A stretch of 59,314 nucleotides of DNA from Perkinsus chesapeaki ATCC PRA-425 (GCA_013115145.1 JAAPAO010000165.1:1-59314), one strand, 5' to 3'. Shown: positions 13,334 to 59,314, numbered from the stretch's first letter. Program-made: numbers and translations. Notes: generated by a model not told the origin, from the letters alone.

Positions 13334-14034
<701 letters not shown>

Positions 14035-22493: not shown

Positions 22494-25400
22494 ATGTCCG
22501 GTTATGTTCCGAATGGAGAAAACCATACAGGAGCTCATCGGAAAGGCATGCCCCCTCTAGGGAAGGACCCGAGTAATAAGGAGCTGTCGGCTGGATGTTA
22601 TTGTGGGGCTTGTAAAAGGAAGTGGTGGGGAAGCGAGAAATTATAGGATTGCTGATTGATAATACTAAAGAGTTAAAGTGACCGGAAATGATAGAATTGA
22701 GAAGACAATGGTGTGATCAATGACAATAAAAAATATAGTTTCGGAAAAGAAATATTCCTAATAAGGAATATATTTTGGAGCTTTACAAACATAACAAATG
22801 TAATTAAATTTTTCACACCGTGGTTTACAGGGATACCGCCGATGCCGGTGAAACGTGCTAATCGGAGTCGACCACCTCTACACCCCAGCACATCAGCTAG
22901 GAACAGGACCAGGGCACCTGGTAGAAGCCCTAAACGGTAGTAGTGGGGAGATGGGGCACATCCCCGATGCCTGGAGTTGCTTGAATTGCTTATGTATCAT
23001 CGCATTGTCTGTTTTACCTCTTCAAAGTCGTTGATATCTTTTTTATTCTGATTAGTCTTTTGATATTAACTAATAGACCTTCCCTCACTCTCTTGCGACA
23101 TTCGGGAAAAACTATTTATTGATGAAATCCCCCCCCCAAAATGTTCGTTTTTCGGGAATGTATTTTTCATCGAGGTTCCAAAAACCAACAGTACTTCGGC
23201 TCAGAAGGGAGCGTAGAGTGAAGTCAGCTGTCAGGCCCCGAAGGCATGAGTTCGATGTTTCCTTTTGGCGAATTTCCCATCAAAATTCTGTACATTTGTC
23301 TTCTATCACCTCCTCCGCATTAGAACCACTGTTCGATCCTTGAAAATGTTATTCTGGATATAATTGTGATTATCCACCAATGAAGAAAACTGCGCGATCG
23401 GGAAAATTTTATGAAGGGAAATAAATTTGAGAGCATCTTGAAAAATGATGAAATGTTTGTAAATTGAATTTTCGCATATTTCAAGTGAAATATTCGGCGA
23501 CTGTCGGGGGAATAGAAGAAGCGGGAAACTTAGGAGTGCAGGGAAAAGCCGGAAATTTATGTGGAAAAAGGCAGGGAAAAGCCGGAAATTTATGTGGAAA
23601 AAGGCAGGGAAAAGTCGGAAATTTATGTGGAAAAATGCAGGGAAAAGTGGGAAATTTATGTGGAAAAATGCAGGGAAAAGTGGGAAATTTATGTGGAAAA
23701 ATGCAGGGTATGTGGAAAAATGCAGGGAAAAGTCGAAAATTTATGTGGGAAAGTGAAAAAAGGGGAATTTCAAAAGGGGAAAGATTGTATTTTTCTTATC
23801 GCTCATTTCACCGATACAAAGCTGACATGTCTTCAATTTATTCAGTACCGTGGTATCACTTGCTGACCCTCTTCACAATCTCCGACAAATTCCGGGAGGA
23901 GACGAAGCGAGCAGGACAGCGTATCTTGCTAAAGCTGAAGAGGTAGAAATACTGCTGCTGAGGATCGAACCGGCGACCTTCAGGACCGCGAAAGTCGAGT
24001 TGTAGAGGAGAAAAATGCAGAGAAGAAATTGGACCCTCCGCCGAAGGCCTGGCCAATCACGTCATTCCTCATTTTTCGGATTCCTGGCGCGGCAATTTAT
24101 TTGATAATTTGCGCTGGTTTGGCAGCGACACTGTACACGTGGTCATTGGGGTGGATAAGTTCTGATGGTAGGAGGCGGAGCGAAGCGTTTTTTGTTTCAC
24201 AGTTTTGTCGTTCAGGCGGATTTCCGCTGTTCGATTGTCCGAGTTCGTCGGTTGTTTCGCTGAATGAGAATGTCGACGGCAATTTTTGCCAGCTGACATT
24301 CGCGTTTGATAACATTACGAACTATCGAGCCGCGGCGGTTGGATTCCAAAGTAGGCGGGGTGTAGAGGAATGGGATGATTTTATTCGGTGACATGTACTT
24401 TTATGAGCTTTCGATCAGGCAGGAGGAATCTAGATGAACTTTAGGGAAATTTGTTATTCGATCATCAGAGATACGATAGGGAGGAGAATATCTCTCCCCA
24501 GGAGAGAGTGCCGAAAGAAGCATCGGATGCATGCCCTTACTCTCCAATCTCACTGGCCATAAATCGGCTTGTTAGTTTATTATATATTTTCTCGTTTAGC
24601 CATATTAATCTTGCTTGTGAATCTTGATTTCTTTGGTTGGATGAAAAAACTATCTCCGTGCGATTTGCCTGACCGGAAATTCACAAATGCTTATGTAGAA
24701 ATATGGAAACGATACCTTCCAGAAGACAATGTAGATAATACATTCCAGAGGACAATGTAGATAATACATTCCAGAGGACAATGTAGATAATACATTCCAG
24801 AGGACAATGTAGATAATACATTCCAGAGGACAATGTAGATAATACATTCCAGAGGACAATGTAGATAATNNNNNNNNNNNNNNNNNNNNNNNNNNNNNNN
24901 NNNNNNNNNNNNNNNNNNNNNNNNNNNNNNNNNNNNNNNNNNNNNNNNNNNNNNNNNNNNNNNNNTAATACATTCCAGAGGACAATGTGGATAAAACAAT
25001 CCAGAGGACAATGTAGATAATATATTATCGTTTGATATTGTATCCTTCACTCTCTCTTATATAGTAATGCTTTGAAAGTGCAGAAGTGTAGAGCACACTC
25101 AAAAAAGGTATATTATTGATCGATTGTTGCTGAGGTGATTGTAATATATTTACGATCGTAGCAAGTCCAATAATGTATGATTTCTCTTTTGGAATGGCTC
25201 CCCTCCTCAGTAGGGAGATAGTAGACGATGTAGGGCCACTCAGATACGTGAAGAGTAGGGTGAGATTTGTCAAGTGAAGTAGTGAAGGGATCAGAATACA
25301 TTATATCATTTTTATTAGTGGTTTAATACTCCACATTGTGCTAGTTGAGATTGAAATTTTTGAGAAGATTTTTCAGAAATTTGTGGTTGAAGTAATGAGT

Positions 25401-28400
25401 TGTTCTGAGGAATCCTCGAAGATTTCGAGCTCAGGGGTATCTTTCGCACTATAAAGATTCCTTTTCAGAGGAGGATGGCTCGCGTTCAACTTGTTGGATT
25501 CCGTCTCGGTATCAGTATGAAGATTGTGATGCGCTGGAGCCGTGCTATGTAAAGAGTATCTTTACGCACTGTGAAGATTTCTGGCCCTTCAGGTGCGGTG
25601 CCGCTCAGCTGTACCATGCCGTACGGCTCTCTATGGGCCGGACTCGAAGACCACACCGAAGCCAAACCAGGTGGAACCAGTGGCCTGTGCAAAGACGGTC
25701 ATTTGGGGAGCTGATGAGAATAATAATATAGTAAGAGGCGTAGGTTCAATTCCCGGTGGAGGCATCTTTTAGTGTTGGGAATGATTTTCGTTATTTTACT
25801 AATAACTTAATAGTATTGGTCACAGTATTGGTAAATTAAAATTGGTCTGCTTGAATGAGAAAATCAAAAAAGGAAATTTGGAAAATAAAATAGAAGAAAA
25901 ATTGGGAAGAAATTAGAATATAAAAAGAGGAAGCAGTTCGAAGTGACCACTCTCCTCTGTTTTTTCGTGCACAAATCCACAAAGGTGAAGGGGAGCAAAG
26001 ATATATCTATAGACATATTCGCCAGCAGTGCCATTGTGCAATTTGTCCCCTTAGTTTTCCCATTCCTCAGGACTCGGGCTGCTCGCAAACGATATGGTTG
26101 AAGGAGGATCAACCTACTACAGTGCCGCAGACGGCCATCGCGGTTCAACCGTAAGTGATTTTTTGGAAACAAATATTTTTTCTCATCGGATGGTCCCGGG
26201 TTCGATTCTCGGTGAGAATAGGTTTAATGCACATTCTATCGAACTGATGAGAATTTCAGAGAAGGTTAAAAGCTGAAAAGTCAATAACAAATTACCATCT
26301 CAGAAGTTCTTCAACCCCAAATCGTCACGCGCCGTAGAATTATTTCCCATCAGATATTGCGACTGGGGCGGCACTGTATCTCCGGCTGACATAATAGGCA
26401 TTCGTGCCCTCTTTCTCGGGGTCCTTCTGTTCTTGCTAACATATATCGGTGAGTGATTAGTGTAATTAGCGCGCGCCCTGGTGATCGATTTGATTAGGCG
26501 CCGTGTTTGCCATTCGAGTGAACTATAAAAGACGGATGACGACGCACGCGGCGGAATTGGAGATGTTACAACCGAAAATGAACGATGTCCGCGAAGATAT
26601 GCATTCTGTGGTAAGTTTGAAAAATGCCGCCGGTGGGGATCGAACTCGCGTGGATGCTTCAGTTTACTCTGTGCATTTTATTTCCTGAAAGCCCATGGCT
26701 TTCGCGGGTTTTTGGTGTTTAGAATATAACGAAGACGAAAAGCACGACCATATCAATGTAGGCAATTTTTTTCAAAAATTCAAAAAATTTTTTTGCGGAA
26801 AATTTTTCCGGGTATTATGTAACATAATACCAGGAAAAATTTTCCGCAAAAACTTTTTTCTCATATATATCCTACATAATTTATGTAGGATATATATGAG
26901 ACTCTTTCGAGCTTTAATCCGAGAAGTATTTTCACTGCTGTTCTTCCCCCAAAGTATCCGCATAATAACACTATTTCCTCCGGTCCAGGTGGAGCGTCGC
27001 TGGTGCGGTCTGCCAGTCGAAGCTGGTCCTCCCCATGACTCAATGAACCACAACGGCCCGAAGTTCGAGACGGGCAGTTTGCTAGAACTGGTAAGAATGC
27101 ATAGAGCGGTCATTGCGGAATCGGAAAATATCCTTTTGGTGAAATATCTCAAGTGTTCTCGTACGTTTACAATTGCGCGGGTCATATTCTCAACGATTTG
27201 CGGTAGGGGGAATTTTCCCCCAATTTTTTCCGCTAATTTTCGTCAAGCTTACAGGATCCGAAAAGAACTATATTGCCGATGTAGAGTTCAGTGTGAATAT
27301 TAATTTGATAGTATATTTTTAGATCCTCTCAAACTTGCCACCGATGCATCCACTTCGTAAAAATTCATTCGCTTTGGAAAACGCAAAATTTTCGTACAAT
27401 TTGTGACTCCTATTCGCGTGAATTTTTTCCACTTTTTTGTGCATTTTGTGACTCGGTTGATACCTTTTCAGAATACCGCGGCGAAGCCGGGCAAACCTCC
27501 AATGACATCGGCAGATCATAAACGGCGGTGAGAGCATCCCGCGTTCGATCCCTGGTGGAGGCGTTTTTAATATCCAGGTTTGCGTCGGGAAGCTGGCGGT
27601 ATCGTCTGCGTTTAATGGCGGGCTTGCGAGCTCGCAAAAAGGCTATGGTAAGTAGTCTGAATAGTTTCGTGGCGCGCTGGAAAATTGTATGTTTTTTCAT
27701 GATTTCTTCTGCAAATTTTCTCATTCTCACGAATGGTTTGTCGAATGTTTCTACAATCTCCATGTAATCGAAGAAGAATTATTATTTTATATTATATAAA
27801 ATTTTATTAAGATCATTCTTCCTACTTTTGCTAGCCCGCCGTTCATACAACTAAAGTCTTGTTAAATATGAACCGGTATAATATATTATCTCCGACTTTG
27901 ATAATGTTTATTGGTTCTGTTAGGTGGCCTCTCGCATCCGTCACCAAGCTGTTATGATGGGTGTCAGCTATCTCCTGTTGATTGTATCGATTATGTGTTT
28001 GGTCTTGTTGATACAGCCACTCAATTACGTCGAGTAAGGAGTCTAAGGAGTTTTGATTGAATTATTCGAGTTGTGGAGGAAGGCATGCGGATTTCATCGG
28101 CTAACAAAAAAAGCTCTTCCCAGTGTCCCCGAATTTTTCCCCATTTTCGCCAATTTTCCCCAATTTTCCCCAATTTTTTCCCGTCAGTTACGCCCCCCGA
28201 GCGTTTCTCGATCCAATAATCCACCCGGCCACGCGAAATTCAGGCGAAGGTGTCTATGCATGGTTGGACCTGTTGGCATTCAGCGACTATATAGTGGAAT
28301 TTATAGTAAGGAGGCGCGGGTTCAATTCCCGGTTGAGGCGCTTTTATCGCATTTTTCAGGTTCTTACAATCGGTATATTGACGTCAGCGTATAAAATGAA

Positions 28401-31400
28401 AACTGGCAATCAGCTGGGCAAAAAAGAAGGTATTTTTTCGGAAATTTCTAGATTTTTTCCAAAATTTTCCATTTTTCAGGGCGGCCCCACGACCTAAATA
28501 CAGCTTCCACAGGTGTCTCACCGCCATCACGAGACGTCGAAGTGAGTTTCCTGGCGCGTGAATTTTTTATTTCACCCTCAGCTTGGCGTCGATTCCCCTG
28601 TTCGGCAAATCAGTGATGATGTCGAGCATGATCCGATCTTCCCAGAGAGCGTCTGCGCGATCGTTCTAGTAAGTTTTAGCGGAGCGAAGTTTCCCTACTC
28701 TATTTTTGACTATTTACACTGAGAGAAGTACGAGGAAAAATTTTCTGACATTTTTCGAAACTTTTTTCTTTTCGAAAATTGTAACTCAATTTTTGTGATG
28801 TATTCATCCTTGAGCTTGACTCCTCTAGATACAATTCGAAAAACTCCGCACTTTTTCCGGAAATTTTTCCGAGTTTTTTTCGAAAATTTTTATGAGTTTT
28901 TTCCGGCAATTTTTCCTTGCTTAGTTACCTGGAAACGGTGCCTGCACCTGGAGCGTTGATGCCCGATCCAATTTAGTGCGCTGTTTGACGCGGCTCATCG
29001 ACATCGGCCTCCCCGCTCGGCAAATCTTTGTGGTCGATTGTGGCAGTGGTCTGACACCAATAGACGATACTTGGCGAGTTGTAAGAAAGAATCGATTTTT
29101 TCCCGGAATTTTCCCCCAGTTTTTTTGGTATTTCCAAGTGTTATATTTTCGGATTATTCTTTCAATTCTATTCCTAAATTTTTAGTACAATTTTTTAGTT
29201 AACGGTTGTGGTTTCTAACTGTTTTTCCCCGATTTTTCATCAGTTGCATCCCAAATTAGTTTTCCAGTCAGCTTCTCAAGAATTTCGACGCTCTTGGCTC
29301 TTTGTCGTGATAACTGAGCCCGTCCAAATTTCTATATTCTTCGTACTTGTTGTAATTTCCCTTCTTTCCATTTCCCGCTTGTCGTTTTCTCAATTTTCCC
29401 AATTTTTCCTCTTTTCTTATAATTCGCCTTGCAGATACATACGGTTGTCTCCCCCGACATCAATTACAGTTACCTTCCCGAAAATAACCGAATTCTCGGC
29501 GCCTATTGGGCAAATAAGATATGGATCCCCTATGCCGGCAAAAAAGCGGCAGCAGCGAGTGGCATGAAGTAAGAACGTCTCGGGTTCGATCCCCGGCAAA
29601 GGCATTTTTATTGTAATTTTTCAGGACTGGCAGTTCGGGTGTGTTCGAAAGCAAATCTGAAGGAAGTACGTCAGTTTTATTGGGAAAATTTCGGAAAATT
29701 CCTCGAAATTTTCAGGTCCGAATGTAACCTTTCGCTACGCTCTTATCGTGGATGATATCGAAACGGTATTGCCGAGCACGTTCGATCTTCGGTCGCTCAA
29801 TCTCGGGTAAGAGGAAAAAATATTTTTTCCGGATTTTTCCCCACAGGGAAAGCAAACCTGCAGCAGTTCACTTTCCCGTTACAATTGACCCGAGAAACGT
29901 AAGAAATTTTCCGGGAAATTTTCAGGAATTTTTTTCAGCGACCGACCGAAGACTTGGCAAAATTCGCCGACATGCGGTTGATGCTACAGTGCGCTCACAT
30001 CAATTTGCAGGCCAACTTGCTCGGTGGGGCACTTTCGACGCAGAGGGGGATAAGCCTTTGGCATAGAGGAGCACTGGATAAGGTGAGGAAAAATTGGGAA
30101 AAATTGGGAAAAATTGGGGAAAATTGGAAATATTGGGAAAAATTGGGAAAATGGGGGAAAATGGGGGAAAATTGGGAAAAATTCGGGAAAATTCGGGAAA
30201 ATTCGGGAAAAATACAATATAAACCTGACATGGTAATATCCGTAAGCCCTGGTTTTTTGTTCTGAACATATTATACATATTTATACTAGAGATTTTGAAA
30301 GGGTTGGTGGGAATCAATTTTTCAGGTGTAAAACCGGAATTTGAGAATTACGCTTTTACACATTTTGTCGAACCGTTCGATCCTCTCCACAATAGGTTTC
30401 ATTTCGAATGACAGATTTTCTTGCAGCGCCGCGAAATTATTTTTGTCAGGTTTTATATGAGCACGGTACGGAGCCTTTTGCCGTGTGCGGTATCTTCGCC
30501 GGCTTACTAATGCTTCGACAGCGCGACGAAGATATCATCAAAACTGCAGTTCAATTGGCTCCTGAAACGTTCGGGAATTCACCTTATGTAAGTGGCGAGA
30601 ATCGAACCTGTGCGGGAAAGGGTGACCGGGGTTTAGACAAGGAATTAAGGTGCTTTATTGATCTTAAGAATCGATGTAAATTTTTGTGAGTATCTTTTGT
30701 CAGGTGGATGTTGGTTTTCAACCTAAAGATATTATTGAGTACGTTGCACAGGAAACGGAAGCCGCCGCACCCGCAAGATTTTTGATGTTGTAAGATATCA
30801 TTATAGATTCGGTCGGAAAGTATCCGGGGGAATTTCAAATGTTTCTATTCTTGTCTAGTCTTCGGGCATTTCTCTCTTTTCCTCTTGCTTTTTACGAGTT
30901 CCTATTTACCTCCTTTTTCTTATGCTTATCTGTATTTCTTCTTCTACCGGTTTTTTGTTTTTTTCCTATCGTGTGGGTTTTTTACCTTCTGTTTCGCCTC
31001 AATTTTTCCTTCTCAATGGTAAGTTATCATCCGTTTCAGGTATTTCCGTGAACTCCTTTGGGTGCCTTCCTTCACCCATATGCGGTCGGTCTTCTTCAAG
31101 CCTTTTTTGTTCTTCGTACCAATTCTATCGGGCATTTTGGATTTCCTTCGCCCTCTGGTGAGTTCCGTCACGCGCCAGGAAATTATCTCTGTGATCCGGT
31201 GAATCGCAATTGCAGAATCACACGCGGAAATGGAAATAAATTTTTATGAATTTGAACGAGAAATAACAAATTAGTTTCAATTGAGGGAATTTGAGACGAG
31301 CGGGATATGTTCATCGGCCAAGCCAATTTGACTCTGAAGGAAAGTGGAATTCGCGTCGAGGGTTCTTTCGGAATTGAATTACGTTCAAAGCTTCCGGGGG

Positions 31401-32831
31401 GGGAGCCTTGTGAACTCTTGTGTAAGTGCATTCGTCTGGAATGAAGGCGAAGGAAATATAATCGAAATGTTGGTGGGGAATATGCTTCTAGGGAAGAACC
31501 AAATACTTTACTTTTGGGCCCTTCTGGGTCTGATGTTCCTCCAGTTTACCTTACTCTTGCGCGGGATGAATAGCGTTAGTACAATACGGAGATCCCTGGA
31601 AAGTCGTGGGTTCGATTCCCAGCGACGGTATTTTTCAGATATTATGCTCTTTGGTGTTTCGGGACCCTTTAAGTTTATTGGTTATGTTAATCGTTCTGGC
31701 CATCTTTTCCTGGCTTCTCGCCCTATTGATTATGGCATCACACAGAAAAGGGTGAGTTTCGAATTCGAAAAAATTAGCTAAATTGCGGTGACTGTTTCAG
31801 ATCATCTCGGATTCGTCGAGCGGGAACAGCGTATGGGTTGCGAGGGTTTCTACTTCATCCATTTTTCCAATTTATTAACTCACTAACGAGGATGGCAGGG
31901 GTAAGAAAATTACGGTAAAAATACCGCCGCCGGGGATCGAACCGGCGCGTGCTCGCCGAGTTTCAAAAGCAGCGGGTGGAAAATGGCTGAGAAGATGAAA
32001 TTGAATCGCTGGCGAGGACCGACTTTCCGGTCGCTCGGTTTTGGTGGAAATTATTATTCAACTAAAAAAATTCAAATTTTTGATGATGAAGTCGCGGCTG
32101 GGATAGGAAAGAGGCGCATGATAAATTTGAAGATGACTGAAAGTTGCTTGTATGCTTTAATGTGTTTCGAGTGCGTCGAAGGATACCAAAATCATAGTAT
32201 TGGAATTCGGCAAAACTTTTTTCGGAAGATTTTTAGGAAGGCGAAGACTTCGGCGACACGGTCGGCGCTTCGTGGCCCTTATCTTTTTAAGCAGCTTAAC
32301 AATCGTCATGATGCTCGATGATGTTGGAGAGAAATTAAAATTTCAAAATTAAAACGAAGTTAAATTGGAAAAGTCAGTTTGCGACGATATCTATCTTACT
32401 TTAATCCTGAACAAAATTTTAATTGGCTTTTCCCCATTTCAAATCGGCCGACTTCCTGGCCCCTGTCCCCTCGCCGAGGATCGAACCCGATACCTCTTCC
32501 TCTCAGCACTTCGTTCTTCTATTTGGTTCGAACTGGCAAGAGCGAGCTCTGACCGGTGATGAGAACTCCCTGCGGGTGGGCCTGCGGGTCGATGACATTC
32601 GAGACATCCCACCGTGCCCGCCGAGCACAGAAGTGGACTGGTTTTCGGTAAGAAGATTTCAGGAACTTTTTCCGACGTTTTACATTTTTTCTGGGGATGT
32701 TCCACGATATTCCTGCCTTGATTTTTTCTCACGCGCCACGAAATTATTTTTTTCAGGTTTGGGCAGGCGCTGGTCCGCAAGGAACTGGTGATCATCGACA
32801 CCATGCAGACCGCGAGATGTCGGAAGACTAG
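22494..32831 (+). CDS. GT2-like (processive glycosyltransferase family 2) multi-pass membrane protein, paralog 1; catalytic motifs degenerate
   Basis: About 30 exons. S/P/R-rich N-terminus (RPPLHPST), TM segments, Cys-containing segment, then QIFVVDCGSG, PDINYSYLPE, RYALIVDDIETVLP, AAVHFPVT, ISLWHRGAL, a hydrophobic C-terminal region and IPPCPPSTEVDWFSVW. TAG at 32829-32831. Colinear with paralogs 2 and 3. Confidence 0.75.
23538..23745 (+). repeat. 33-bp tandem repeat, about 6 copies
   Basis: Unit GGAAATTTATGTGGAAAAAKGCAGGGAAAAGYS with starts at 23551, 23584, 23617, 23650 and 23683. Lies inside a paralog 1 intron. Confidence 0.95.
24717..25022 (+). repeat. 26-bp tandem repeat interrupted by an assembly gap
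   Basis: Unit GACAATGTAGATAATACATTCCAGAG (24725, 24751, ...). About 6 copies before the N-run and about 2 diverged copies after it. Confidence 0.95.
24870..24965. other. Assembly gap (96 N)
   Basis: Run of N inside the 26-bp array, so the true array length is unknown. Confidence 0.99.
26859..26901. repeat. Perfect 43-bp palindrome (21-bp arms, 1-nt spacer) in an intron
   Basis: TCTCATATATATCCTACATAA - T - TTATGTAGGATATATATGAGA. Confidence 0.95.
30086..30212 (+). repeat. 10-bp-periodic A-tract array (GGGAAAAATT)n in an intron
   Basis: About 12 degenerate units. Related arrays at 28130-28181 (complement), 37848-37908 (29-bp unit) and 40187-40286 (20-bp unit). Confidence 0.9.
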
Positions 32832-33138
32832 CAAAATCTTCGCAGTGCGGCGACGCGTATCTTTTGGGGGAGGTTGTTGTTAATAGGAATCTTTGTATTA
32901 TGACTGTTGCATTATTATCACATTTATTGACTTCGGTGGAAGTCTCGAGAACTTTCGAGCCGCAGAAAATAGTATATTAAATCAGACGGTTACAGAAGGA
33001 TGAGTGTTTGGTTTGAGTGAAATGAATGGGCGGAGCGAAGCGATTCATGATTACGGTTTTCGTTTCTTGAAGGGTTTTTGGATTATTTGAGCGGAGCGAA
33101 GCGATTCAGAATTATCATTTTCATCTCTCATTCATCTC

Positions 33139-36100: not shown

Positions 36101-39100
36101 TTTTGTGGCGCGCGGTATTTATGTTTCTATTTCAGGACGGAAGCTTATCGCCGGGCGCCAGAGGCTTTTCCGCTGACCAGGATTCCCCGTCTGGTCTCCG
36201 GTCGAATGTCCAGCGTCATTTTGAGCACGGGTGCTTATGCGTGCTAGTTTTATTCATACCAAATTTTGGTATACTTTTAGGAGTATATTGAGTCATGACC
36301 CGAGTCCAACGGCAATGCTGGCACGAGCACATTCCACGACAAAGTTTGGGATTGGTTAGATTTGGAGAATCTTCACAGTGCGCAATGAGTATCTTTAGGT
36401 GCGATGAATCCACTCTGTCGAGACCGTGCTGCTGGTTGGGATGTTCAGGTTAAAAACATGCGGGTGAGTTTTGTGGAATGGCGGGAAATTTCAGAAAAGA
36501 GAACAAAATTTCCGGAAAAACGGAAAATTTCCAGAAAAAAAACGGAAAATTTCCGGACAAAAACGTGTTCGCTGGCAAGTAAACAGTGGGAAAAAATGAC
36601 AGACGTGGGGAAATTTTTTCAAGATTTAAGATTTTTCCGGTATTTTTCCTGTGACAGGTCGGACTACGACGACGGCAGAGGACTGCGTTAGTTCGAGGCG
36701 TGCTGAAGACGATGATACGTGCATTTCTGTAGGAGTATCTTTGCGCACTGTGAAGATTTTTGTGTCAGTTTCCTCATTCTTCATATCTTGGCTTGTCTCT
36801 TTGTATTTGCCGTTTCTCCTCGACAACTGTTCGATTCATCTTGGTGGAGTGAGTTGAGAAAATGTAAGTGAGAGTAAGATTGTAAGATTTCAGGTATATT
36901 GGATGCTGCCAGAGGCATACAGCAGGTCGGGACGGGGTCTCCTTGGGTATTCACGGATTTGCTCGTCCTTGTGGACGTTGCCTTGTTGATTTTGATGGCG
37001 ATTCCATCTGCAGTGCGGGCTAGTTGGTAAGGGGGTTGGTTCAGGCTTCGGAAGGTTGCTGGTTCAATTCTCGGCGGGGCTATGCTCACTTTAATTCATT
37101 GCAAATTTGCCGAGTTTGATTTCTTAGGTGGCCTCGAGGTGACTTTAAGTCAGACAGGATGACATCCTCAGACGCCCCGACCAAGCGAGCCCATGAATTT
37201 AGTCCACTTGACAAGAGTAAGTCACGCGTTGAGGAAATGCAAGATTTGCAAGGCTTCGCAAGAGGGAGTTATACTAATAATTGAATACTTGCTAACCAAG
37301 GCTACATCTTCGCACATAATCGTCGGGGGAATTTCATTTGTCGAAGTCAGGAAAATTAGAAAAATTTCTCCTGTATGAAAATTTCGTCATAATTTTCTGC
37401 CCGTGTGTGGGTGTTCGTGTAGTGCGTGGGAGGACGAAAACTACTGTCAACGAGTTGGAAATCTTTTGAAATTTTCGGGTTCGGAAGTATTCCATTTTAA
37501 TTTTCAGGCGCGCGACAAATGACGGTGGTTGACCAGGACGTATGTGTTATAATTGTCATTCGCAGCGGGAGCTGCGCAGATTTTACAAAACGCAAGCGAA
37601 TCGCTAAATTGGTCCGCAGGTAAGATCGTAAAATCTTCGCAGTGCGCAAGGAGTATCTTTAGGTGTGAGAATCTTTTCCCGTGTGAAGCTCCAGGATTTT
37701 CACGAGTATTTGTGGTGGATCATGGCACAGGGTTGATGCCAGCTGATGACTGTTGGAAGATGCTACAGGTGGGAATATTCCAAATCGATCACGCGATCGA
37801 TTTCAAGCATTCTGTCTCTGGAACTATTCTACTGTAACTTCCCGGGAAATGATATTTTCGCGGAAATTTCCCGGGAAATGATATTTTCGCGGAAATTTCC
37901 CGGGAAAAATGACCAAAGCCCCTTGGCGTGGAAATCGCAGTAGAACAATCGATGAGGCTTGTACACAAAATTCTGTCCCTCGCGTACTAGTTAGATAACA
38001 ATGCTCATCCGGCATAGGAATTCATGATAGTAAATTAATACATTAAATAATCCTCGGGGTGATTCGAACCTCTGCCCTTTCCGTTGTAGGACACAGTATC
38101 TCCCCATATTAACTACGCTTACCTGCCTGAAGATGATAAGGCAGTTGCCATCCACTGGGCCAACAAATCCTGGGTCTCGTCGCAAGTTCGACGATATAAT
38201 GCCAACACTAGCGGACCCAAAGTCGCGATGTAAAAGACGCGGGAAAATTTCGGGAAATTTCGGAAATTTTTGGCAGTTTTCGCTACGCCATGGTAATCGA
38301 TGATGTCGACGGGGTTGATGATTTTCTGTTGCCCACCTCGATGGACGTGGATGTTAAGGTGAGCGTTGAGGAACTGCAAGATTGGTCAAGATTGCAAGAT
38401 TCCAGGAGATTGCCAGTAAAGGTGTTAATTTGGTTTGGTTCCCCTCGACGGTTCGACCGGTTGTACAGGGACAGGATCAATCAGTTTGGGTTGACGATTA
38501 TTTATTAAAGAAAGATTCCATGTAAGTACAGGGTGCGCACTGCGAAGAATTTGCGCATGCGTGCAAATATTCGTATCTTTTCGTATTTACCGCATAGAGA
38601 CAATGGCTTATTATCGTAACTGTATTGATATGATACCTGATCGTTCTGGAGAGAGGTGGAAAGTAGATCGCTCGAGGTTGATTGGCAGGAATACAGAGAT
38701 TTACTAAAGTTAAAAAAAAACCTTCTTTTAATTAATCGCAGAATTTTATCGGGGGAAAATTAATGTATGAATAAAGAACTATGGCGGTTGAGGGAGGGCA
38801 AAGGGCGTCCTGGTCGGGAATGAGAATCTTGATTTGTCAGGTTTTTCTCGATTCAGGTTTGAAATATAATTCGTAATAAAATACCATTTTTCAGAGTTTC
38901 GTTAACTCAAGAGAAGTTGGGAAGGTCGGCGGTGGTGACACCCCAGAAATGTGTGTGCCTTTGGAATCGCAGAGTGCTATATGAAGTGATGGAGAGGATG
39001 AGTGGATCTGATGGGGTAAGGGAAAAAATATTCTGAAAAAAATTTTAGGCTGGAAAGTTGCGGAAAAATCCTAGTGGATAAGATTTTTTGCGAAAATTCG

Positions 39101-40785
39101 AAAGCAGTGGAAATTTTTTCCCAAAATTTTCGAATTTCTCCGGAAAATCGTTTTTTTTCAGAAGGACATGACGAATGCCGAGCTAACTCAGCGAATGTCG
39201 ATCGAACAGATGAAAATGAAGGGAGCATCCTCGATGATGGCAGCGCCACAGGTGGGTTACAAAAATCGATCACTTGATCGATTCGTCTGTGTGGTTGGTG
39301 ACCAGCTGATTGCTTGGGTGCGTTCCTGGTGCGAAGATAAAATTGAAATGATTTTCCGAGTGAGTGACAGGAAATCACTTTGGTTTGGAAGCGTTAGATT
39401 GCGATTAGTATAGTCTCAAGCGTTACAGATGCGGTTGTGGTGACCGGGTGTGGGGCAAAGTGGTTCTAAACCGACGTCTATTGAGAGGAATGGTTGGCAA
39501 TTACGAATTTTTATCGAAGAGGAAAATTTTTGGGCTGGCAAGATTATTTTTTACTCTGTATAATAGTCTTACTGATCAATCGTGATTTTTTTAATTTTTT
39601 TGGAGTGTGGTATTTTTCAGGTTCGTGTTACAAATCATGACCAGTTTGGTTCGCACTGTAGAGAATGGAGGATACTCTGCACCTTAATGTTAGAATCCAT
39701 CAACCCCTTTGTGTGTACAGCTTCTAGGTGGGGACAATTTGCACAATAAATTTGCACGCGTGCGCACGTTTGTGCTTTTCTTCAGATGGGCAGCCAAATT
39801 ATGGATTTTGCTATATTATGTTGTACCCGCCTTCTTCATTATCACAAGGTAAGCAAAAATTCTCCCAAATTTTCCGGAAATTTTGTTTTTTCCCTCAGGC
39901 CTTTTTACCTCGGAACACTATTGTTAAGAGCTCCAATCGATATTCCGATCTTGTTGGCAGTAAGTATAAAAAGATATTTTTCGAGGTTGAATAGTGACCT
40001 ACGCGGCTGTATCCAACTTTATAGAAGGTCTTCTGGCTCTCCCTGGATTTTCTCAAAAAATATTTTACCTAAACTTACTCTTTCCCTCTTCCTCCGATTT
40101 CCCTGAGGATTTTTCCGTTTCTCTTTCATTCCGAAGTTCCTCTTCTTGCAAAATTTCTCATCTTCCTGAAATTCCCTTATTTTTCGTGAAATTTTCCCAT
40201 TTTTCCTGAAATTTTCCCATTTTTCCTGAAATTTTCCCATTTTTTCCGAAATTTTCGCATTTTTCCCGAAATTTTCCCATTTTTCCCACCTCAGATATAT
40301 TATGTAATTCTAAACGTGCTCTCCGTTTCCCTAACTCTCCTGGCCCTCCGCAAGCGCCCCGAAATCAAACGCCATTGGACCATGTAAGCCGATAGTAGCA
40401 AATCGATCATCTGGGCGAGCGCTTTTGTCAGCCCTCTCCTGCTGTTTGTATTACCGCTGTACAAATTGGCGTATGACATTGCATATCTTCATACCAGCCT
40501 TTTTCACACAATGTTCAAATTGTGTGCATCTTACCCATCTATAAGGGAAGGGGAAAAGAAGGTAATAATCTTGCAATCTTGCATTTTCTCAACGCTGGTA
40601 TGCCGCTTCAGCCTTGTGGAGCGGGAGTGCCGCCGTTGCCGGGAAGCTCTACGGTTGATTGGTTTTCGGTGTGGGTGACCGAGGACGAAATCGAAGTTCT
40701 GAAGGGCCGCGGAAAGTCAATTCATAAAAGCGGCGGGGCGGTTTGGGTTGCCCCGGAGAAGGGGAGTAGGGGTAGTCGATTGTAG
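33139..40785 (+). CDS. GT2-like multi-pass membrane protein, paralog 2
   Basis: MSSSRSTY..., RPPLHPST, RVFVVDHGTG, PHINYAYLPED, RYAMVIDDVDGVDDFLLP, VCLWNRRVL, TM exons and VPPLPGSSTVDWFSVW. Stop at 40783-40785. Confidence 0.75.
35734..35854 (+). repeat. 44-bp tandem repeat (about 2.7 copies) built on the TGCGCA element
   Basis: TTTACGCGGGTATCTTTGCGCACTATGAATATTTTAGTATCGAC starting at 35734, 35778 and 35822. Confidence 0.9.
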
Positions 40786-43700: not shown

Positions 43701-46700
43701 GCTCTTTTTTCAATAGCGCGTTGCAAAAGTCCCTGCAAAGCCAGTGGAGAGTAAACGACAGTAAATGATACCTTTCAGGAAACACAAGCTCAGATGACTC
43801 CTTTTTCGAGGGAGAGTATTCCAGTCCGGTTCCGGCGCGGCAACCTCGGATAGAAGTGCCTCGGTACAGAGCGGATACGTTTCGATCTGATGGGGGTAAT
43901 TTCGTGGCGCGGTGACTGTCGGCTGCTGATAGTCTTCACTAGGTGATTCGGACTTCAATTCGGATGCGGAAGGGAGCGTAATGGGTGATGCTGATTTGGC
44001 TGGTCGACGAGGGCGGGTGGTCGGGCCGGCTATGGTGGCATCTGATAGGAGTTTTGGGGCTATACTGAAGCAGGAACGACAGTAAGTTGGTAGGGAGAGT
44101 TGTTTCTAACTGCAAGTGAACGGAGCAGTTTGGCACTGTGCTCGCTCAGTGGCTGATGCTGAAACTCGCATTAGTGCGTGGAAGGCAATTTGGAACGAAT
44201 ACTGAGTTACGAAATTGGTTCGTTGGACGCTGCAATGGATATAACGTGCCCACCAGAGTGCACCCTCATCTGGGCGTGACTGGAGTTGCCCAAAATGTAT
44301 CACATTGCTTATTCATTTCGTATTATGCTCATGATTATTATCCGCTCAAAAGGTCAGTGGTTTATCATTCTCATTATCGGTGATGCTTTGCTGATTCTGT
44401 CGTCAAGGTACCTCCTGTCACGTACTCCTCCGCCGTTCCTCTCACCCCTGCCTGAAATACTTCGCGTCATCGGTTCAATAATAGCATTGATATTAGCAGT
44501 CGGCGTGGCAGTTACAGCGATGGTGGGATCAATAAATTGGATAACTGCACTCAACTGCCCGTATCCGGTAAGATATCCAAATCGATCACGCGAGCGATTT
44601 GTTTTTTTAGGCTATACCGTTTGCTGCTAGCGAGAACATAGACGGTCTCTACTGTCGAGTGAGGGTATCCTACTCTAGTGTGACCCAGCAGCAGCAGGAT
44701 TGGGCTACGATCTACAGTCCGTACACGACAAGCGTAGCGAACCGCAATGGAAATTTAGGCTGTAAGTGTGTGAGTGTTTCGAGCGCAACAAAAACAATCA
44801 ACGAATTGGTGAAGTCTCCGGCAAATTCCCGAGAAATAGGCGCGTAAATTTGTGCGGTATTTTTTGGATGTTAGAATAGAAATTTGTCTTCAGGAAGGTC
44901 CCTGGTTCGATTCCCACAGTTGTCGTTTTTAGGTACGCAGATTAGCAATAATGAAGTTAGTTGTCTATCGGCCATTCCCTGTGATTTCGCAGTACAACTG
45001 TCATCGGACGGCACTAGTTGTCCAGCCAATACCATTCTCTGGACTGAAGGAGAGTAACCGATGCCTGCCGCAGGTTCATTTCATACCACATTTCCCTCAG
45101 ATTTAATGACAACATATTACCTTTTGGTGGCTCTTGCCAGTATCTTTTGGCCCTCGATCTTCAGCAGTATCTAGTTTCCGGCGCTGGTATAAGCGTTGAG
45201 CCTTTCTGCACAGCAAACGGCGACGTCCCACCGGGAAAAGTATTTGTTGGATTTCGTGGCGCGTGAGAAATTTCATTTTCAGGTGATTATAGCAAACGCC
45301 TTATTGGTACTTTGTGCCGGTTGGGTTATCTTCATCGTGATTGGCGAAATACGAGTCTACGTAAGAAAGTTGAAATAGCGCGCGAGTTGGTGATCTATTG
45401 TGTCGTCTCGGGGGTTTGTTCGCGTAGCAGTTAATCGATCACGCGATCGATTTGTTAACTCAGGTTAAACGACAGAGGAAAGCTCGGCTTGAAGAGGTGG
45501 ATAGGAAAGTGATGGAGCCGAAACTCCCTGGTGTAGGTTTCAATTTTGTGGCGCGCGTGAATTTTAATCAGGTGCACGCGGCATATCGTCGTCGAGTACA
45601 AGCCAGTTGGACCGAGCAGGCTAATCGGGAGCACAGAAGGTTAATGGAAAAACAAGTGAGAGCGAAGGCTTGATTTTCAGATGGGCGGGTCTGCCTATAT
45701 CAAATATAAAACATTTATAGTTTATATTTTCGGTATAATTCTTTGAGTCGCGCAAAGCTGTGGGGAATTTGGCCTAAATCTAATGTAAATTCTTACTTTT
45801 TTCTCAATCTTCATTCGGCTCCTTGAGGTGGAGGAGGGACTCTTGATTTTCATCATTTCGCGAAGTTTGTAAAAAGCGAGCGTTTCGCTATCGATGCCCC
45901 GTTTTTCAGGCCGAGGAGCAACATAGCGACACAGATTCCGTGAAATCTCCGCAGTCCGTCTTCTCGGTTGATTTGGATTCTCCTTCTGGTCTGAGGAGCA
46001 ACGTCCATATGGCGTTCGAGCACGGAAACTTACAAGACTTGGCTGGAGGATTGGTAAAGACGGTTGATGAGAGTGGTGAGTAGGAGGGGAGGGCTTTAGA
46101 ATATATATACCAAATTACGCAGAGGAAGTCGGTGAGCATGAGGAGGATACAAGGCACGGAAAGCTCCAGTGTTGGAGTGTCTAAGTTTCCAATGTTGCTC
46201 GGGCAAGGAAATGTCGATGAAGTTTTATTACATTGCTTTGCTCGATTTTTGCATGTTCCCCCCACTATCAGGGAGTGCACCCCCTACAGCGATCTTCCTT
46301 AGCAGACAGTTCACGCCTCCATCGCATCTACTCGATGATCGAGTCTCGATCATCTTCCATATTCAGAGACCCTTGCTGCTGTAGTATCTCTAGCTTCAAC
46401 TGTCACGTTCGATCGATTGATTCTAAGTATTTGGCCTGCTATTCTTGGCGCGCGGGAAGACTATGCTCTATATTATAGAGCCATAATTGCCCTCCTTTTA
46501 TGGATCTACCTTCAGTATAAATACCATGAAATAGTATATACTATTGTTTCCTGATTTTTTCCACAAGAAATCTCGCAATTTACTTGCTCGCGGCTGAGCG
46601 TTTTCACTAGTTCGTATAAAGATTCTCGCCTCCCGTCTCAGATGTGCATGAGCTTCGCTCCGCTGAGGGTATGTAACTTTTCGGCCTCAGGAAACCCGAT

Positions 46701-47712
46701 ACATCCGTACGCTCGATTTCAAAGTAAAGAGTGGCGTGCGAGAGTATCCGTGGCGTTATTGGAGATTCGATACAGAGCCAAAATGGCCGTCAAACGAGGA
46801 GTTCTGTATTGGTCTTTAACGATGGTTTTGTAAGCGAAAGGTCCCTAGTTCGATCCTCGGCGGAGGTCTTTTTATCATTTAGGGGATGGATTCTACTGTT
46901 CCTTTGCTGCCTTCTTGTGGTGGGAGTGTTCCCGAATCAGATTTATCAGAATTCTGGTAAACTGGACTTACTGGATTATATAAACAATGGGGCTGATGGA
47001 GGTGAGGATATCTTTGAGGTTGACCATGCAAGATACGAAAAATGTTGACTACCGAATGATGATCCCCTTGCTAGAGATCCTTAGAGGAGTTCTTATTCTG
47101 TGCCGCGTGTTACCCGAGTTCCGATGGTTTTTTGTTCCTGCGAAATAATTACAAAAATCTTTGTATTTTCAGAGTCAGTGCCAGCAGTCGCCGTGATCGA
47201 CTGGCTGGTAATTCTCGACGGCCTCATTCTCACAATTCTCGCCTTCCTTCCAGCTCTTCTCAGTTCACGGTAAGCATAATCTTGCAATCTTGCACTTTCT
47301 CAACGACGGTTCTCATCAGCTGGCCGTCATTGCCGACAGCTAGGCGATCTAGTGCTGGTCGCAGCATGTCTGAGAGTGGCAATCCGGTGGCGGCGATAAA
47401 TCGAGAAGAAATCGCAGATGAAGATGTTACGGACGTCTGCGTGATCATGGCTCTGCATAGTGGCTGCTGCACTGACCCGATAAAGAGGGCTCGCGTCCGA
47501 AAGATTCTGCGGAGGTGAAAATCTTCGCAGTGCGCAAACGTATCTGAAGCTTGAATTTAGGTGTACATCTCTGTTTCCTCCAAAAGTTCACGGTTGTAGT
47601 CCGATTTTCGTCGTGGAGGTCGGCAATGAATTAGCACCAGCAGACGATTGCTGCAAAATGATTCAAGTAATAAAGAAGGATCTTGCAATCTTGCTCGTTC
47701 TTGCATTTTCTC
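36853..47712. repeat. Dispersed intronic element AATCTTGCAATCTTGCAYTTTCTCAACG
   Basis: Forward at 40567, 47278 and 47680. Reverse complement at 36853-36889, 37227-37252 and 38364-38401. Confidence 0.85.
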
Positions 47713-49445
47713 CACGCTTGTTTAGGATTCTGTTTCACCGGATATTAATTATGCATATTTGCCTGAAGATAACAAATCGATGGCGATTTATTGGGCTAAC
47801 AAATCCTGGGTCCCATCCGTACTGAGATACGCGAATCCTCAGGAGAATCGCAATTCCGCGTAATAATCGATCGTTTGATCGATTTGCAATTTCGTATCAT
47901 GGTTTCAGATTTCGGTATGCTTTGTTGATTACCGATGCGGATTCGGATGATGATTTGATGTTGCCAGTGGCGCTTGATTTGAACACTCAGGTGAGTCATG
48001 TGGAAATAAAAATATCCTTCCACTGGGAATCGTACCGGAGTCGTTAGCTTACAAGAAGAGCATAATACTCACTCGGCTGTTTTGACTTAGGATTATAGAC
48101 GCCATGGAATCAAGGTCGTCTGGTATATGCCAACAGTCCGCGGTGTGAGCAACATGCCTCTGGTGACTATGGAGGATTACATGGTCAAGCAGCGAGCTAT
48201 GTAGGTGTTTCTTTGTAAAACGCGCGCATCCAGATGATCGATATTTCTCAGAATGTCATTTACACAGGAGAAGCTGGGAGGATCATGCGTGGTGACTCCG
48301 CTGAAATCGGTGATGTTATGGGATCGAGCCGCTCTTCATAGAACTCTCGCTGGCTTTATGGGCATTAATGTAAGTCCTATTTCGTGGCGCGTGACGATTG
48401 CAAGATGTGGCTGCGGTAGGCCGATGATGCTCCTGGATTCCTACAGCCATCGTTGATGATGGATCGATACCTGCGGCATGATTTTGAAACTTCGTTAGGA
48501 GGCAGTCAGGTAGCCCGGTGACCTCCGTACAGCCGACCCAAGCTCGATCCCGGGGTGGTTCATTTTTATAAAAGTAATGTTGTGCTTGTCTCAGATTCGT
48601 ACAGACACCGGGAGCAACCATTTTTCTTCCGAGTGCGCTCGTTGGTATCTTCGGTTGAGAATCTTCTCTGTTGTATTTGCCCCGACTGTCCGCGTGAAAG
48701 GTTGTTGTTCTCGAGAAGCTATTGTTGGTCGAATCTGGTCGTTTTTTGCTGACATAGTGCCGACAGTGATGATCATATTGAGGTGAGCATCATCTGTAGC
48801 TACCGAGGATTGAACTCGGGGTTGTTCGCTGACGAATCTTGTTCTTTAACTTTAGGCCATTTCTTCTAGTTTCAATATTTCTTCGGCAGCCCGCCCTTAT
48901 CGGTGTATATTTTGGTATATACTTTGTAGTCTTTCATGGAATATCTGTAGCTTTAATGGCGATAACGTTGCGTAACCGACGAGACGTTCGCCGGCAATGG
49001 AGTAAGACCACGCTTTTCTGGCTCTCAAATCAGCACATCGCTCTACTCTTCAGACTGGTTCGTGGCAACCGTTATGTTGCCATTCTATAAAATCTACCAG
49101 TACGTCATGGATGTCTATCCGGCGCTCCTTCACGTTATGTTCTCTATTCGTAAAATACCAGGCGGCCGTCAGAATATGCATACGGTAAGTCCGTATCACC
49201 ACTCTAACGGTTAAGTTTCGTGCTTGACTTGCTAACAATCATGAGTTCGATTCCATGCCACGGTTTTCATAAAATACAGAGTCGTTGTTTCTCAGGGAAC
49301 TTCAGTCCCTCTGCCGCCTGCTAAGGACGTTGACTGGTTCACCGTGTGGAAGTCAGGCAGCGACACCTCCGCGTCGAACATTCCTGGGGACATCGATGAC
49401 ACTGACCAGAAACGGCGAGACAAGAGGAAGAAGGCACGCCGCTGA
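41783..49445 (+). CDS. GT2-like multi-pass membrane protein, paralog 3
   Basis: MEPGSSGQEMENG...HHTGGHRR (matches paralog 1 NHTGAHRK), RPPLHPST, PIFVVEVGNE, PDINYAYLPED, RYALLITDADSDDDLMLP, VMLWDRAAL, SECARW, TM exons and PLPPAKDVDWFTVW. TGA at 49443-49445. Confidence 0.75.
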
Positions 49446-59186: not shown

Positions 59187-59261
59187 GGGGGGGGGGGGGG
59201 GGGGTGGGTTTTTGGGGGGGGGGGGGGGGGGGGGGGGGGGTTGGGGGGGGGGGGGGGGGGT

Positions 59262-59314
<53 letters not shown>
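59187..59314 (+). other. Terminal poly-G run, probably a sequencing or assembly artefact
   Basis: Near-homopolymer of about 125 G at the window end. Confidence 0.8.

Follow-up and report, generated by a model that had tools for sequence, protein, structure and literature searches.

The block at 22.5–49.4 kb of the Perkinsus chesapeaki window (the whole stretch of DNA analysed, 59,314 nt) consists of three diverged paralogs, putative members of the GT2 family, arranged head-to-tail. The island described here earlier is exactly this tandem array, rather than an anonymous region; counting it, at least 13 places in the genome combine several short word families with A/T-tract filler. Judged from sequence, the block appears to represent a real kind of gene marking that goes beyond ordinary intron make-up, and we infer how its motifs act. 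Our tentative reading is that an old GT2-type array has introns built on factor-docking words that would mark a subset of genes, and that the filler is secondary.

The paralog array and its flanks

Gene structures were taken from paralog-anchored coding blocks and from hand-checked introns of the CaM gene. Ab initio models from splice-aware dynamic programming (with a 3-periodic Markov coding model for which 93 long ORFs served as training set) were dropped because codon bias was too weak (GC3 48%) and introns were placed in any sequence, whichever the strand. The number of introns per gene is thus a rough figure only. P1 is the longest copy (Table 1). P2 and P3 shared 52% amino-acid identity and 27% identity at fourfold sites (n = 63). 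Similarity between 22.8 and 42.3 kb was considered as a boundary repeat around the filler-rich part and rejected: it reflects a conserved segment that precedes every paralog, is present near 33.3 kb too and is probably the first exon.

Conserved blocks recognized by eye included VVDxGS-like and DxD-like stretches, for which the D, D, D, QxxRW signature was considered; a scan for Q/RxxRW gave doubtful candidates only, at 30013 and 39241. The window's genes, searched exon by exon, yielded no match to the GT2 profile, and phmmer with the ORF at 47484–47822 found nothing among 1.8 billion representatives. No relatives of the locus were found in sister species or metagenomes. A search with the published spliced leader of P. 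marinus, with 1 mismatch allowed, likewise gave no match. A profile of the paralogs' best-conserved exon had 14 matches in the genome, and those on contigs C3448 and C2817 lay inside or adjoining matches to PF13641 (Glyco_tranf_2_3) of 35 and 29.8 bits, above the cut-off. Some members of the family elsewhere were intron-poor, with open frames of 628–797 aa.

The flanking genes had been credited with short, plain introns, and our data agree. The CaM gene (− strand, 13.3–14.0 kb) has five introns of 38–51 nt, and the ORF gaps of the OAT-like aminotransferase and the GST, both confirmed by Pfam, are compatible with short introns.

Motif families in the block and across the genome

We identified eight short motif families in the block, where at least six had been claimed. 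These were A (AATCGATCACGYGATCGATT, a perfect 20-nt palindrome at 36004), B (TTTCGTGGCGCGTGA), C (GGCGGAGCGAAGCGWTTC), D (tRNA-gene 3′ ends with GGTTCGA), G (TTGCGCACTGYGAAGATTT), E (GATTGCAAG, repeated), H (a near-palindrome) and I (TTAGCGCGCGCCC). The relatives previously reported for H were recovered at 39750 and 40814 with 3–4 mismatches per 20 letters; by our own calculation, about 0.05 chance matches are expected in the window. P1 carried chiefly tRNA-end (D) and B motifs, P2 chiefly A and G, and P3 mostly A and B.

The block stood out sharply from its flanks and from samples of the genome, which bears out its description as an island. Motif sites of the eight families numbered 46 in the block versus 5 in 32 kb of flanks (Fisher p = 2e-11), and a 90 kb genome sample gave one match in total for families A, B, C, G and E. 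Recurring 11-mers, counted as a k-mer check, numbered 135 in the block versus 0 in the flanks; two genome samples of 27 kb yielded 25 apiece, all of them simple repeats, and shuffles yielded 0–3. The motifs had been described as CpG-rich, and CpG observed/expected was indeed 1.08–1.17 in the three genes versus 0.82–0.98 elsewhere. A reading of the motifs as methylation targets is weakly supported; CpG was not depleted, and a C5-methylase gave a single match in the genome, on a small contig and with an internal stop.

Genome-wide matches (forward + reverse) numbered 229 + 233 for A (≤1 mismatch; 6 block sites), 108 + 127 for exact B (3 block sites), 134 + 137 for C (≤1 mismatch; 5 block sites), 54 + 48 for G (≤1 mismatch; 6 block sites) and 58 + 65 for the filler dimer (≤2 mismatches; at least 8 block sites); all controls gave 0. 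The block makes up 0.065% of the genome, and the excess is therefore about 20-fold to >90-fold relative to a uniform expectation that does not model uneven intron density. With such an excess, the make-up of the block is not that of most genes. The related P. marinus is reported to have 109,756 introns in 87 Mb, about 1.3/kb (PMC7789003, Table 1), and the block possibly about 4/kb by our own rough estimate. Intron density was rejected as the cause of the enrichment, as it could supply a factor of about 3 at most, against the 20–90 observed.

The idea that the motifs are special to this locus did not hold. Each of the four families counted genome-wide had about 100–460 copies. Near-identical copies occurred at many non-homologous intron sites, with only a 15–25 nt core in common, and family A was found also in a glutamate synthase gene confirmed by Pfam, where it lies in an intron of 46 nt. 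A search for other islands, as the preliminary description had proposed, returned at least 12 other contigs with at least three families within 10 kb. The other islands include C564 (13–23 kb), C802 (25–36 kb), C2106 (12–34 kb), C299 (11–20 kb), C454, C1478, C1730, C1784 and C2791. Outside the contig of the block, pairs no more than 3 kb apart among the matches listed (observed versus expected) were 13 versus 0.7 for A–B, 12 versus 0.7 for A–G, 18 versus 0.6 for A–filler, 8 versus 1.2 for B–G and 8 versus 1.0 for C–G. The family exon profile had no further match on any of the 12 other island contigs.

In homologous introns of P2 and P3 the G core was kept at 20 of 20 letters and the A core at 19 of 20, and the remainder of each intron differed. 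By this comparison, at least some word cores are evidently maintained by selection, and their conservation in paralogs that are otherwise saturated speaks against pure junk. In most homologous introns the paralogs had no motif in common, and the motif profile differed per paralog; word insertion and loss would also fit this pattern.

Table 1. Paralogs, repeat arrays and selected motif sites in the window
Feature	Position	Strand	Remarks
Paralog P1	22800..32750	+	Coding blocks collinear with P2, P3; ends approximate
33-nt (3 x 11) A-tract minisatellite	23537..23739	+	5.2 copies
26-nt minisatellite with assembly gap	24712..25020	.	Between two conserved P1 coding blocks
Two adjacent near-perfect hairpins	26783..26901	.	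P1 filler; 38-nt arms 92%, 21-nt arms 100%
10-nt A/T-tract array (GGAAAAATTG)	30087..30213	+	12.8 copies; P1 intron
tRNA-gene 3′ end (B-box, acceptor strand, T run)	31609..31635	+	Fills tiny P1 intron
Motif B, exact, reverse orientation	32729..32743	-	P1 3′ part
Two C motifs	33029..33107	+	61 nt apart
Paralog P2	33250..40700	+	Collinear chain of at least 17 conserved blocks with P3
Motif A	33253..33272	.	Close to P2 5′ end
Motif C, exact	35533..35550	+	~38-nt P2 intron
Tandem array, 33- and 44-nt units	35677..35856	+	G motif in every unit
Motif A	36004..36023	.	42-nt P2 intron; homologous to P3 site 45433
Motif G, opposite orientation	36741..36759	+	~40-nt P2 intron
Motif G	37631..37649	-	43-nt P2 intron; 20-nt core identical to P3 copy at 47519
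Motif A	37783..37802	.	14 nt into ~318-nt P2 interval
Family H near-palindrome	38549..38568	.	Relatives at 39750 and 40814
Motif A, 1 mismatch	39264..39283	.	54-nt P2 intron
20-nt A/T-tract array	40163..40288	+	6.2 copies; in ~332-nt P2 interval (39963–40294)
Paralog P3	42250..49400	+	Compact introns; filler 0.14/kb; A, B, G, E, D motifs still present
Motif A, 1 mismatch to pattern	44580..44599	.	43-nt P3 intron
Motif B, exact	45252..45266	+	~37-nt P3 intron
Motif A	45433..45452	.	Homologous P3 intron; 19/20 letters as in P2 copy
Motif G	47519..47537	-	Homologous 46-nt P3 intron
Motif A relative, 3 mismatches	47865..47884	.	P3 intron; P2 counterpart has filler instead
Motif B, exact, then GATTGCAAG	48380..48394	+	P3 intron; P2 counterpart is ~150 nt filler

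A/T-tract filler and the assembly gap

Expanded AT-rich filler introns had been ascribed to all three genes. This was true of P1 and P2, where filler words (GGA3-7T2-6 or complement) occurred at 4.6/kb and 3.8/kb, but not of the compact P3. Densities elsewhere were 0.2–0.4/kb in the flanks and 0.07–0.22/kb in the 90 kb genome sample. The filler was dense across 22.5–42.5 kb only; the stretches noted earlier at about 15.05 kb and 20.5 kb are present. The same pairs of conserved coding blocks lay 318, 364 and 332 nt apart in P2 versus 56, 42 and 0 nt in P3, and 360, 199 and up to 631 nt apart in P1. The ~332-nt P2 interval has no counterpart in P3, where coding is continuous, and the ~318-nt interval with motif A also contains a 29-nt repeat and a tRNA-end piece. 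The two adjacent hairpins in P1 filler gave weak miRNA-like Rfam matches only.

Autocorrelation of A/T tracts across 22.5–42.5 kb showed peaks at 10–11, 20–21 and 30–31 nt, which were not found in P3, the flanks or the genome sample. When 1.4 kb of tandem arrays was masked, the first peak near 10 nt alone persisted, indicating that the phasing of the filler largely comes from a few arrays.

The window contains an assembly gap at 24870–24965 (96 N), with the same 26-nt minisatellite on either side (24712–24869 and 24966–25020). Because the unit contains TAG and TAA and its length is not a multiple of 3, no + strand frame can traverse the array. By our own count, a missing length of 22 mod 26, such as 100 nt, would put both sides in register. 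The array is flanked by the conserved P1 coding blocks 24263–24319 and 25590–25718, which align to P3 44629–44685 and 44953–45054, and so it most likely lies in a P1 intron. The motif families and minisatellites account for the assembly gap, and gene finders will be misled at such loci.

Origin and role of the words

The many tiny introns of the array are built on members of genome-wide, CpG-rich word families of 15–25 nt. Under the reading that we tentatively favor, the words would likely be DNA-level docking sites, here putative, for sequence-specific factors by which a subset of genes is marked. Some introns of P1 and P2 later swelled to at least 150 nt via slippage-type A/T-tract minisatellites with units of 9–12 nt or multiples; the filler would most likely be a secondary, tolerated expansion that leads to phased, bendable DNA. 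A DNA-level role is preferred over an RNA-level one because all non-palindromic families occurred in both orientations within + strand genes, and because family A alone folded better than shuffles. A more elaborate form of this idea, in which a gene compartment is marked by intronic arrays of selected, orientation-independent docking words (B-box-bearing tRNA-gene ends included) together with helically phased A/T-tract minisatellites, as a chromatin or insulation device encoded in the sequence, seems to us quite unlikely.

It is somewhat improbable that the block is instead a passive sink, with functionless words left over from tiny insertional elements or from captured stretches of DNA, such as tRNA-gene ends, that make or fill introns and accumulate along with slippage repeats in genes where the constraint on intron size is weak. 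Such a sink would account for motifs in both orientations, for the differing motif profiles of the paralogs and contents of homologous introns, and for motifs that lie within tandem arrays too (35677–35856 and contigs C17 and C2875). The block has 12 GGTTCGA/GGTTCAA B-box matches, most with an acceptor-like strand and T run. Its tRNA-end copies, seven of them in P1, differ in acceptor sequence and hence are independent acquisitions; the end at 31609–31635 has an inverted partner of different sequence at 31917–31943. ARAGORN found no tRNA gene in the window. Derivation of families C and G from genes for snRNA or for other known RNAs was rejected, with no Rfam match even for short stretches and permissive settings. 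Ratios of one-mismatch to exact copies implied 7–15% mean divergence from consensus by our own estimate, as in a decaying repeat family, and the intron-poor relatives elsewhere mean that the intron-rich state could be derived. Against the sink, aligned contexts of all window copies revealed no target-site duplication, terminal inverted repeat or common flank beyond the core (family A is itself palindromic, but mid-intron); the cores in two homologous introns were kept despite saturated fourfold sites; and the co-clustering of unrelated families would require a common target preference.

We also considered it unlikely that the words act at the RNA level, as pre-mRNA structures or binding sites that assist the spliceosome in delimiting introns of very small size, for instance by keeping both splice sites close to each other or by providing the branch region. 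In modelled tiny introns, the words usually began 3–19 nt past the 5′ splice site and lay about 10–25 nt from the 3′ site, and this fairly fixed offset would fit an RNA-level role. Introns with family A form an 8–12 bp hairpin (z scores −1.2 to −3.3), and the T run of tRNA-end introns serves as the pyrimidine tract preceding AG. However, a hairpin common to all families was rejected, as the 20 introns with B, C, D or G folded no better than shuffles (mean z −0.2), and the two orientations of the non-palindromic families change the RNA sequence. A general aid would be expected across all genes, rather than concentrated in a few loci, and the five CaM introns splice without strict motif copies. 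The remaining possibility, that the block merely shows the ordinary intron composition of the species, is highly improbable. The families are genome-wide, housekeeping genes included, and CaM intron 4 holds a diverged G-like core; but this explanation is contradicted by the excess over genome density for five patterns, by recurring 11-mers confined to the block when compared with its flanks, and by the single match in 90 kb. Because at least some cores are selected, intron sequence in this parasite lineage is not neutral stuffing, and introns may carry the mark of a gene class. Transfection and CRISPR are available for P. marinus (PMC8062965), and the idea is thus open to experiment.

Introner elements are known from Amoebophrya (PMC7789003) and from Micromonas and Aureococcus (Huff et al. 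2016, as cited in PMC7789003). The block is like them in that families of repeated sequence make up many short introns, in its palindromic or inverted-repeat cores able to form an intron hairpin, and in that less-conserved genes are favored. In contrast to introners, the block's introns have canonical GT-AG splice sites, have in common a 15–25 nt core and not the entire intron, are without direct repeats or terminal inverted repeats at their borders, and bring several unrelated families together. Recent spread also appears less likely for the block, as two cores predate the split of paralogs whose silent sites are saturated; contents differ in other homologous introns.

Periodic An/Tn clusters (PATCs) lie in introns of C. 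elegans (PMC4947018; bioRxiv 10.64898/2026.08.08.743475) and, according to the preprint, are derived from minisatellites. The mark of such clusters, intronic A/T tracts that recur about every 10 bp over extended stretches, was found in 22.5–42.5 kb. In both systems, non-coding A/T tracts lie in introns with a phase close to the helical repeat of DNA, and in both they enlarge introns of a subset of genes. The block differs in that its periodicity comes mainly from a few tandem arrays, runs of G or C flank its tracts (GGGAAAATTT type), its filler is accompanied by CpG-rich motif families, and its host is a unicellular alveolate. The compartment idea would follow a logic like that of nematode PATCs with different parts, in a combination so far undescribed.

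Extra-TFIIIC sites, which have a B-box only, exist in yeasts. The block likewise has isolated B-box matches (GGTTCGANTCC) that are not part of a complete tRNA gene, occur in both orientations and may be clustered. Its copies differ in being tRNA-gene 3′ ends with acceptor strand and T run, placed inside spliceosomal introns, and they are candidate TFIIIC docking sites only. Repeated intron sequences were already familiar in the form of introners, selfish elements of recent origin, and phased A/T tracts as the PATCs of nematodes; what is distinct here is that, in a minority of genes, several unrelated short word families occupy tiny introns together with phased filler.

The paralog array and its setting

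The block at 22.5–49.4 kb of the window (contig C716 in an assembly of 41.7 Mb and 3,544 contigs) is a tandem array of paralogs, whose introns concentrate short word families that are found genome-wide and are partly under selection. Six-frame comparison resolved three collinear genes, P1, P2 and P3, on the + strand. Thus, the island placed at 22494–49445 in the preliminary description coincides with a head-to-tail gene array. A piece of ~130 nt was kept upstream in each paralog (22830–22960, 33298–33354 and 42281–42385). Its first and third copies are 73% identical as DNA, and it probably represents the first coding exon.

Positions of the paralogs, other GT2-family loci and further motif islands
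Feature	Position	Strand	Basis
P1	~22.8–32.75 kb	+	six-frame comparison
P2	~33.25–40.7 kb	+	six-frame comparison
P3	~42.25–49.4 kb	+	six-frame comparison
GT2-family loci elsewhere	C3448:35912–36562, C1839:28272, C485:3208, C2817, C1522		exon profile
Island contigs	C211, C299, C454, C564, C630, C802, C1240, C1478, C1730, C1784, C2106, C2791		motif matches

Exons of the block genes, searched one by one, gave no GT2 match in Pfam, and a 113-aa ORF had no relative among 1.8 billion representative proteins. The best-conserved exon, used as a profile, returned 14 genome matches, and those on C3448 and C2817 lay within or adjoining PF13641 matches above the cut-off. Such PF13641-linked paralogs lend the GT2 label of the block genes good indirect support. 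Family members elsewhere were partly intron-poor, with open frames of 628–797 aa, versus exons of 40–60 aa in the window members; this difference reflects either the gain of many introns in the window clade or intron loss in the remaining members.

A run of N at 24870–24965 lay within a 26-nt minisatellite extending to both sides. With TAG and TAA present in the unit, and a unit length not divisible by 3, no + strand frame can cross the minisatellite. It sits between P1 coding blocks 24263–24319 and 25590–25718 (the aligned P3 blocks are just 267 nt apart), and this position, together with the lack of a crossing frame, indicates that the gap is most likely intronic, affecting only repeat copy number. 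By hand count, register between the two sides requires 22 modulo 26 missing bases, for example 100 versus the 96 N written.

Directly right of the block we observed a stretch duplicated in tandem (49472–51400; period, 853 nt), in which 49472–49771 matches 50325–50624 at 100% and the duplicated ORFs are on the − strand. The contig ends in a 128-nt G run (59187–59314, 93% pure), which resembles an artefact of sequencing or assembly, not biology.

Intron length and filler

The flank genes for an OAT-like aminotransferase and GST were confirmed in identity, and the CaM introns, described earlier as short, were five of 38–51 nt. Flank introns agreed with published figures for P. marinus (median 49 nt, mean 124 nt, 99.3% GT-AG, ~1.3 per kb genome; PMC7789003, Table 1). 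The 21-nt spliced leader published for P. marinus (PMC3101222) matched nowhere in the assembly with 0 or 1 mismatch, a result without weight for or against the genus.

Within the block, interval lengths were taken as distances between matching conserved coding blocks. They were 360, 318 and 56 nt in P1, P2 and P3 after block 37601–37771, and 199, 77 and 73 nt after 38090–38200. For P2 and P3 (no P1 value) they were 364 and 42 nt after 38421–38522, and 332 and 0 nt before 40295–40381. Words of the A/T-tract filler (GGA3-7T2-6 or complement) occurred at 4.6 per kb in P1, 3.8 in P2 and 0.14 in P3, at 0.2–0.4 per kb in the flanks and at 0.07–0.22 per kb in a 90 kb unselected genome sample. Together, these densities and lengths showed that the expanded AT-rich introns proposed for the whole block are real in P1 and P2 and do not extend to P3.

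Most of the filler was made up of tandem arrays, whose units measured 9–12 nt or multiples thereof. Autocorrelation of A/T tracts peaked at 10–11, 20–21 and 30–31 nt solely in 22.5–42.5 kb, and only the first peak was left when tandem arrays were masked. Two of the array's genes bear secondary minisatellite expansions. P1 filler also held two adjoining near-perfect hairpins (26783–26901; arms of 38 nt at 92% and 21 nt at 100%), which in Rfam gave weak miRNA-like matches alone, below threshold.

Intron words in the block and across the genome

Eight families of short CpG-rich words (A, B, C, D, E, G, H and I) were found in the block, where at least six had been proposed. Family A is a 20-nt palindrome, and family D comprises tRNA-gene 3' ends with B-box, acceptor strand and T run. 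The block carried 46 motif sites, versus 5 for the remaining 32 kb of the window (Fisher p = 2e-11). Because this set of families was derived from the block itself, an unbiased test was run on 11-mers with at least three spaced copies per 27 kb. It yielded 135 in the block, 0 in the flanks, 0–3 in shuffles and 25 in each of two genome samples, where they were only trinucleotide and contig-end repeats.

Families A, B, C and G were dispersed genome-wide, and reversed-pattern controls gave 0 matches for every genome-wide pattern. As the block makes up 0.065% of the genome, the counted patterns were in ~20-fold to >90-fold excess over genome density, of which intron density can explain ~3-fold at most. 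The profiles were 7 D and 3 B in P1, 8 G and 4 A in P2, and 3 A and 2 B in P3.

Matches to the counted patterns in the genome and in the block
Pattern	Genome, forward + reverse	Block
A, ≤1 mismatch	229 + 233 (97 + 82 exact)	6
B, exact	108 + 127	3
C, ≤1 mismatch	134 + 137	5
G, ≤1 mismatch	54 + 48	6
Filler dimer, ≤2 mismatches	58 + 65	at least 8

CaM intron 4 (38 nt, 13480–13517, − strand) carried a diverged G-like core (AGTGCGCA ... GAGTATCTTTCAG), so weak family relatives extend into flank housekeeping genes. In each of the three copies observed (sampled locus L003 1360–1400, window 22418 and 26466), motif I (TTAGCGCGCGCCC) had a palindrome A half-site (GATCGATT or ATCGATCA) 4–5 nt behind it and is thus a composite word.

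Among the matches listed, with the window's own contig left out, pairs of unlike families at most 3 kb apart far outnumbered those expected from independent placement (A–B, 13 observed versus 0.7 expected; A–G, 12 versus 0.7; A–filler, 18 versus 0.6; B–G, 8 versus 1.2; C–G, 8 versus 1.0). The search for further islands that had been suggested found at least 12 other contigs where at least three families share a 10-kb stretch. None of the 12 island contigs had a further match to the GT2-family exon profile; C2307 was the sole other contig with a GT2-family paralog among the motif matches listed. Four 3-kb loci picked solely for motif A held 1.0–1.7 filler words per kb. In one, a Pfam-confirmed glutamate synthase gene, the palindrome lies in a 46-nt intron, and another combines palindrome, motif I and filler. 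Loci of this kind number at least a dozen, the block included.

Conservation, turnover and possible roles of the words

P2 and P3 share 52% amino-acid identity in their best blocks and 27% identity at fourfold sites (n = 63), which are saturated. In two homologous introns of this pair, core letters were kept at 20/20 (G) and 19/20 (A), and the remaining letters differ. Retention of the cores despite saturation argues for purifying selection on them. Most homologous introns of the paralogs did not have their contents in common; one P3 intron that carries B and GATTGCAAG, for instance, corresponds to ~150 nt of filler in P2. The tRNA-end copies differ in acceptor sequence, indicating independent pieces, not one copied element. 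Motifs also occurred inside tandem arrays (window 35677–35856, C17 and C2875). On C17 (L026 1500–1750) a 55-nt minisatellite has motif B in every unit, and on C2875 motif G is spaced at 56 nt.

A common RNA hairpin for all families is not supported, as folding superior to that of shuffles was confined to A introns (z −1.2 to −3.3); mean z was −0.2 over 20 motif introns versus +0.6 for CaM introns. Rfam searches of the block, permissive settings included, yielded no known RNA, and ARAGORN identified no tRNA gene. CpG observed/expected exceeded 1 in all three paralogs, and the C5 DNA methylase family had one genome match (C138:655–1557, a small contig, with an internal stop) that may represent contamination or a broken gene; consequently, the proposed methylation role has little support.

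We tentatively favor sequence-specific docking on DNA, in which the words would be putative sites for sequence-specific factors, because they are orientation-independent (all non-palindromic families were found in both orientations within the block's + strand genes) and have no common RNA structure. In tiny introns, on approximate models, the word begins 3–19 nt past the 5' splice site and ends ~10–25 nt ahead of the 3' site. An RNA-level aid to splicing, which such a placement would fit, seems improbable. A neutral insertional sink is a possible but rather doubtful source of the words; no terminal repeats or target duplications were found beside the cores. Ordinary composition is very hard to credit.

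The closest known systems to these introns are introner elements and nematode PATCs. Introner elements are defined by border repeats, which the block's cores lack, and by recent spread, for which the evidence in the block is mixed. The PATC-like periodicity is present in the block's filler, mainly through its tandem arrays.
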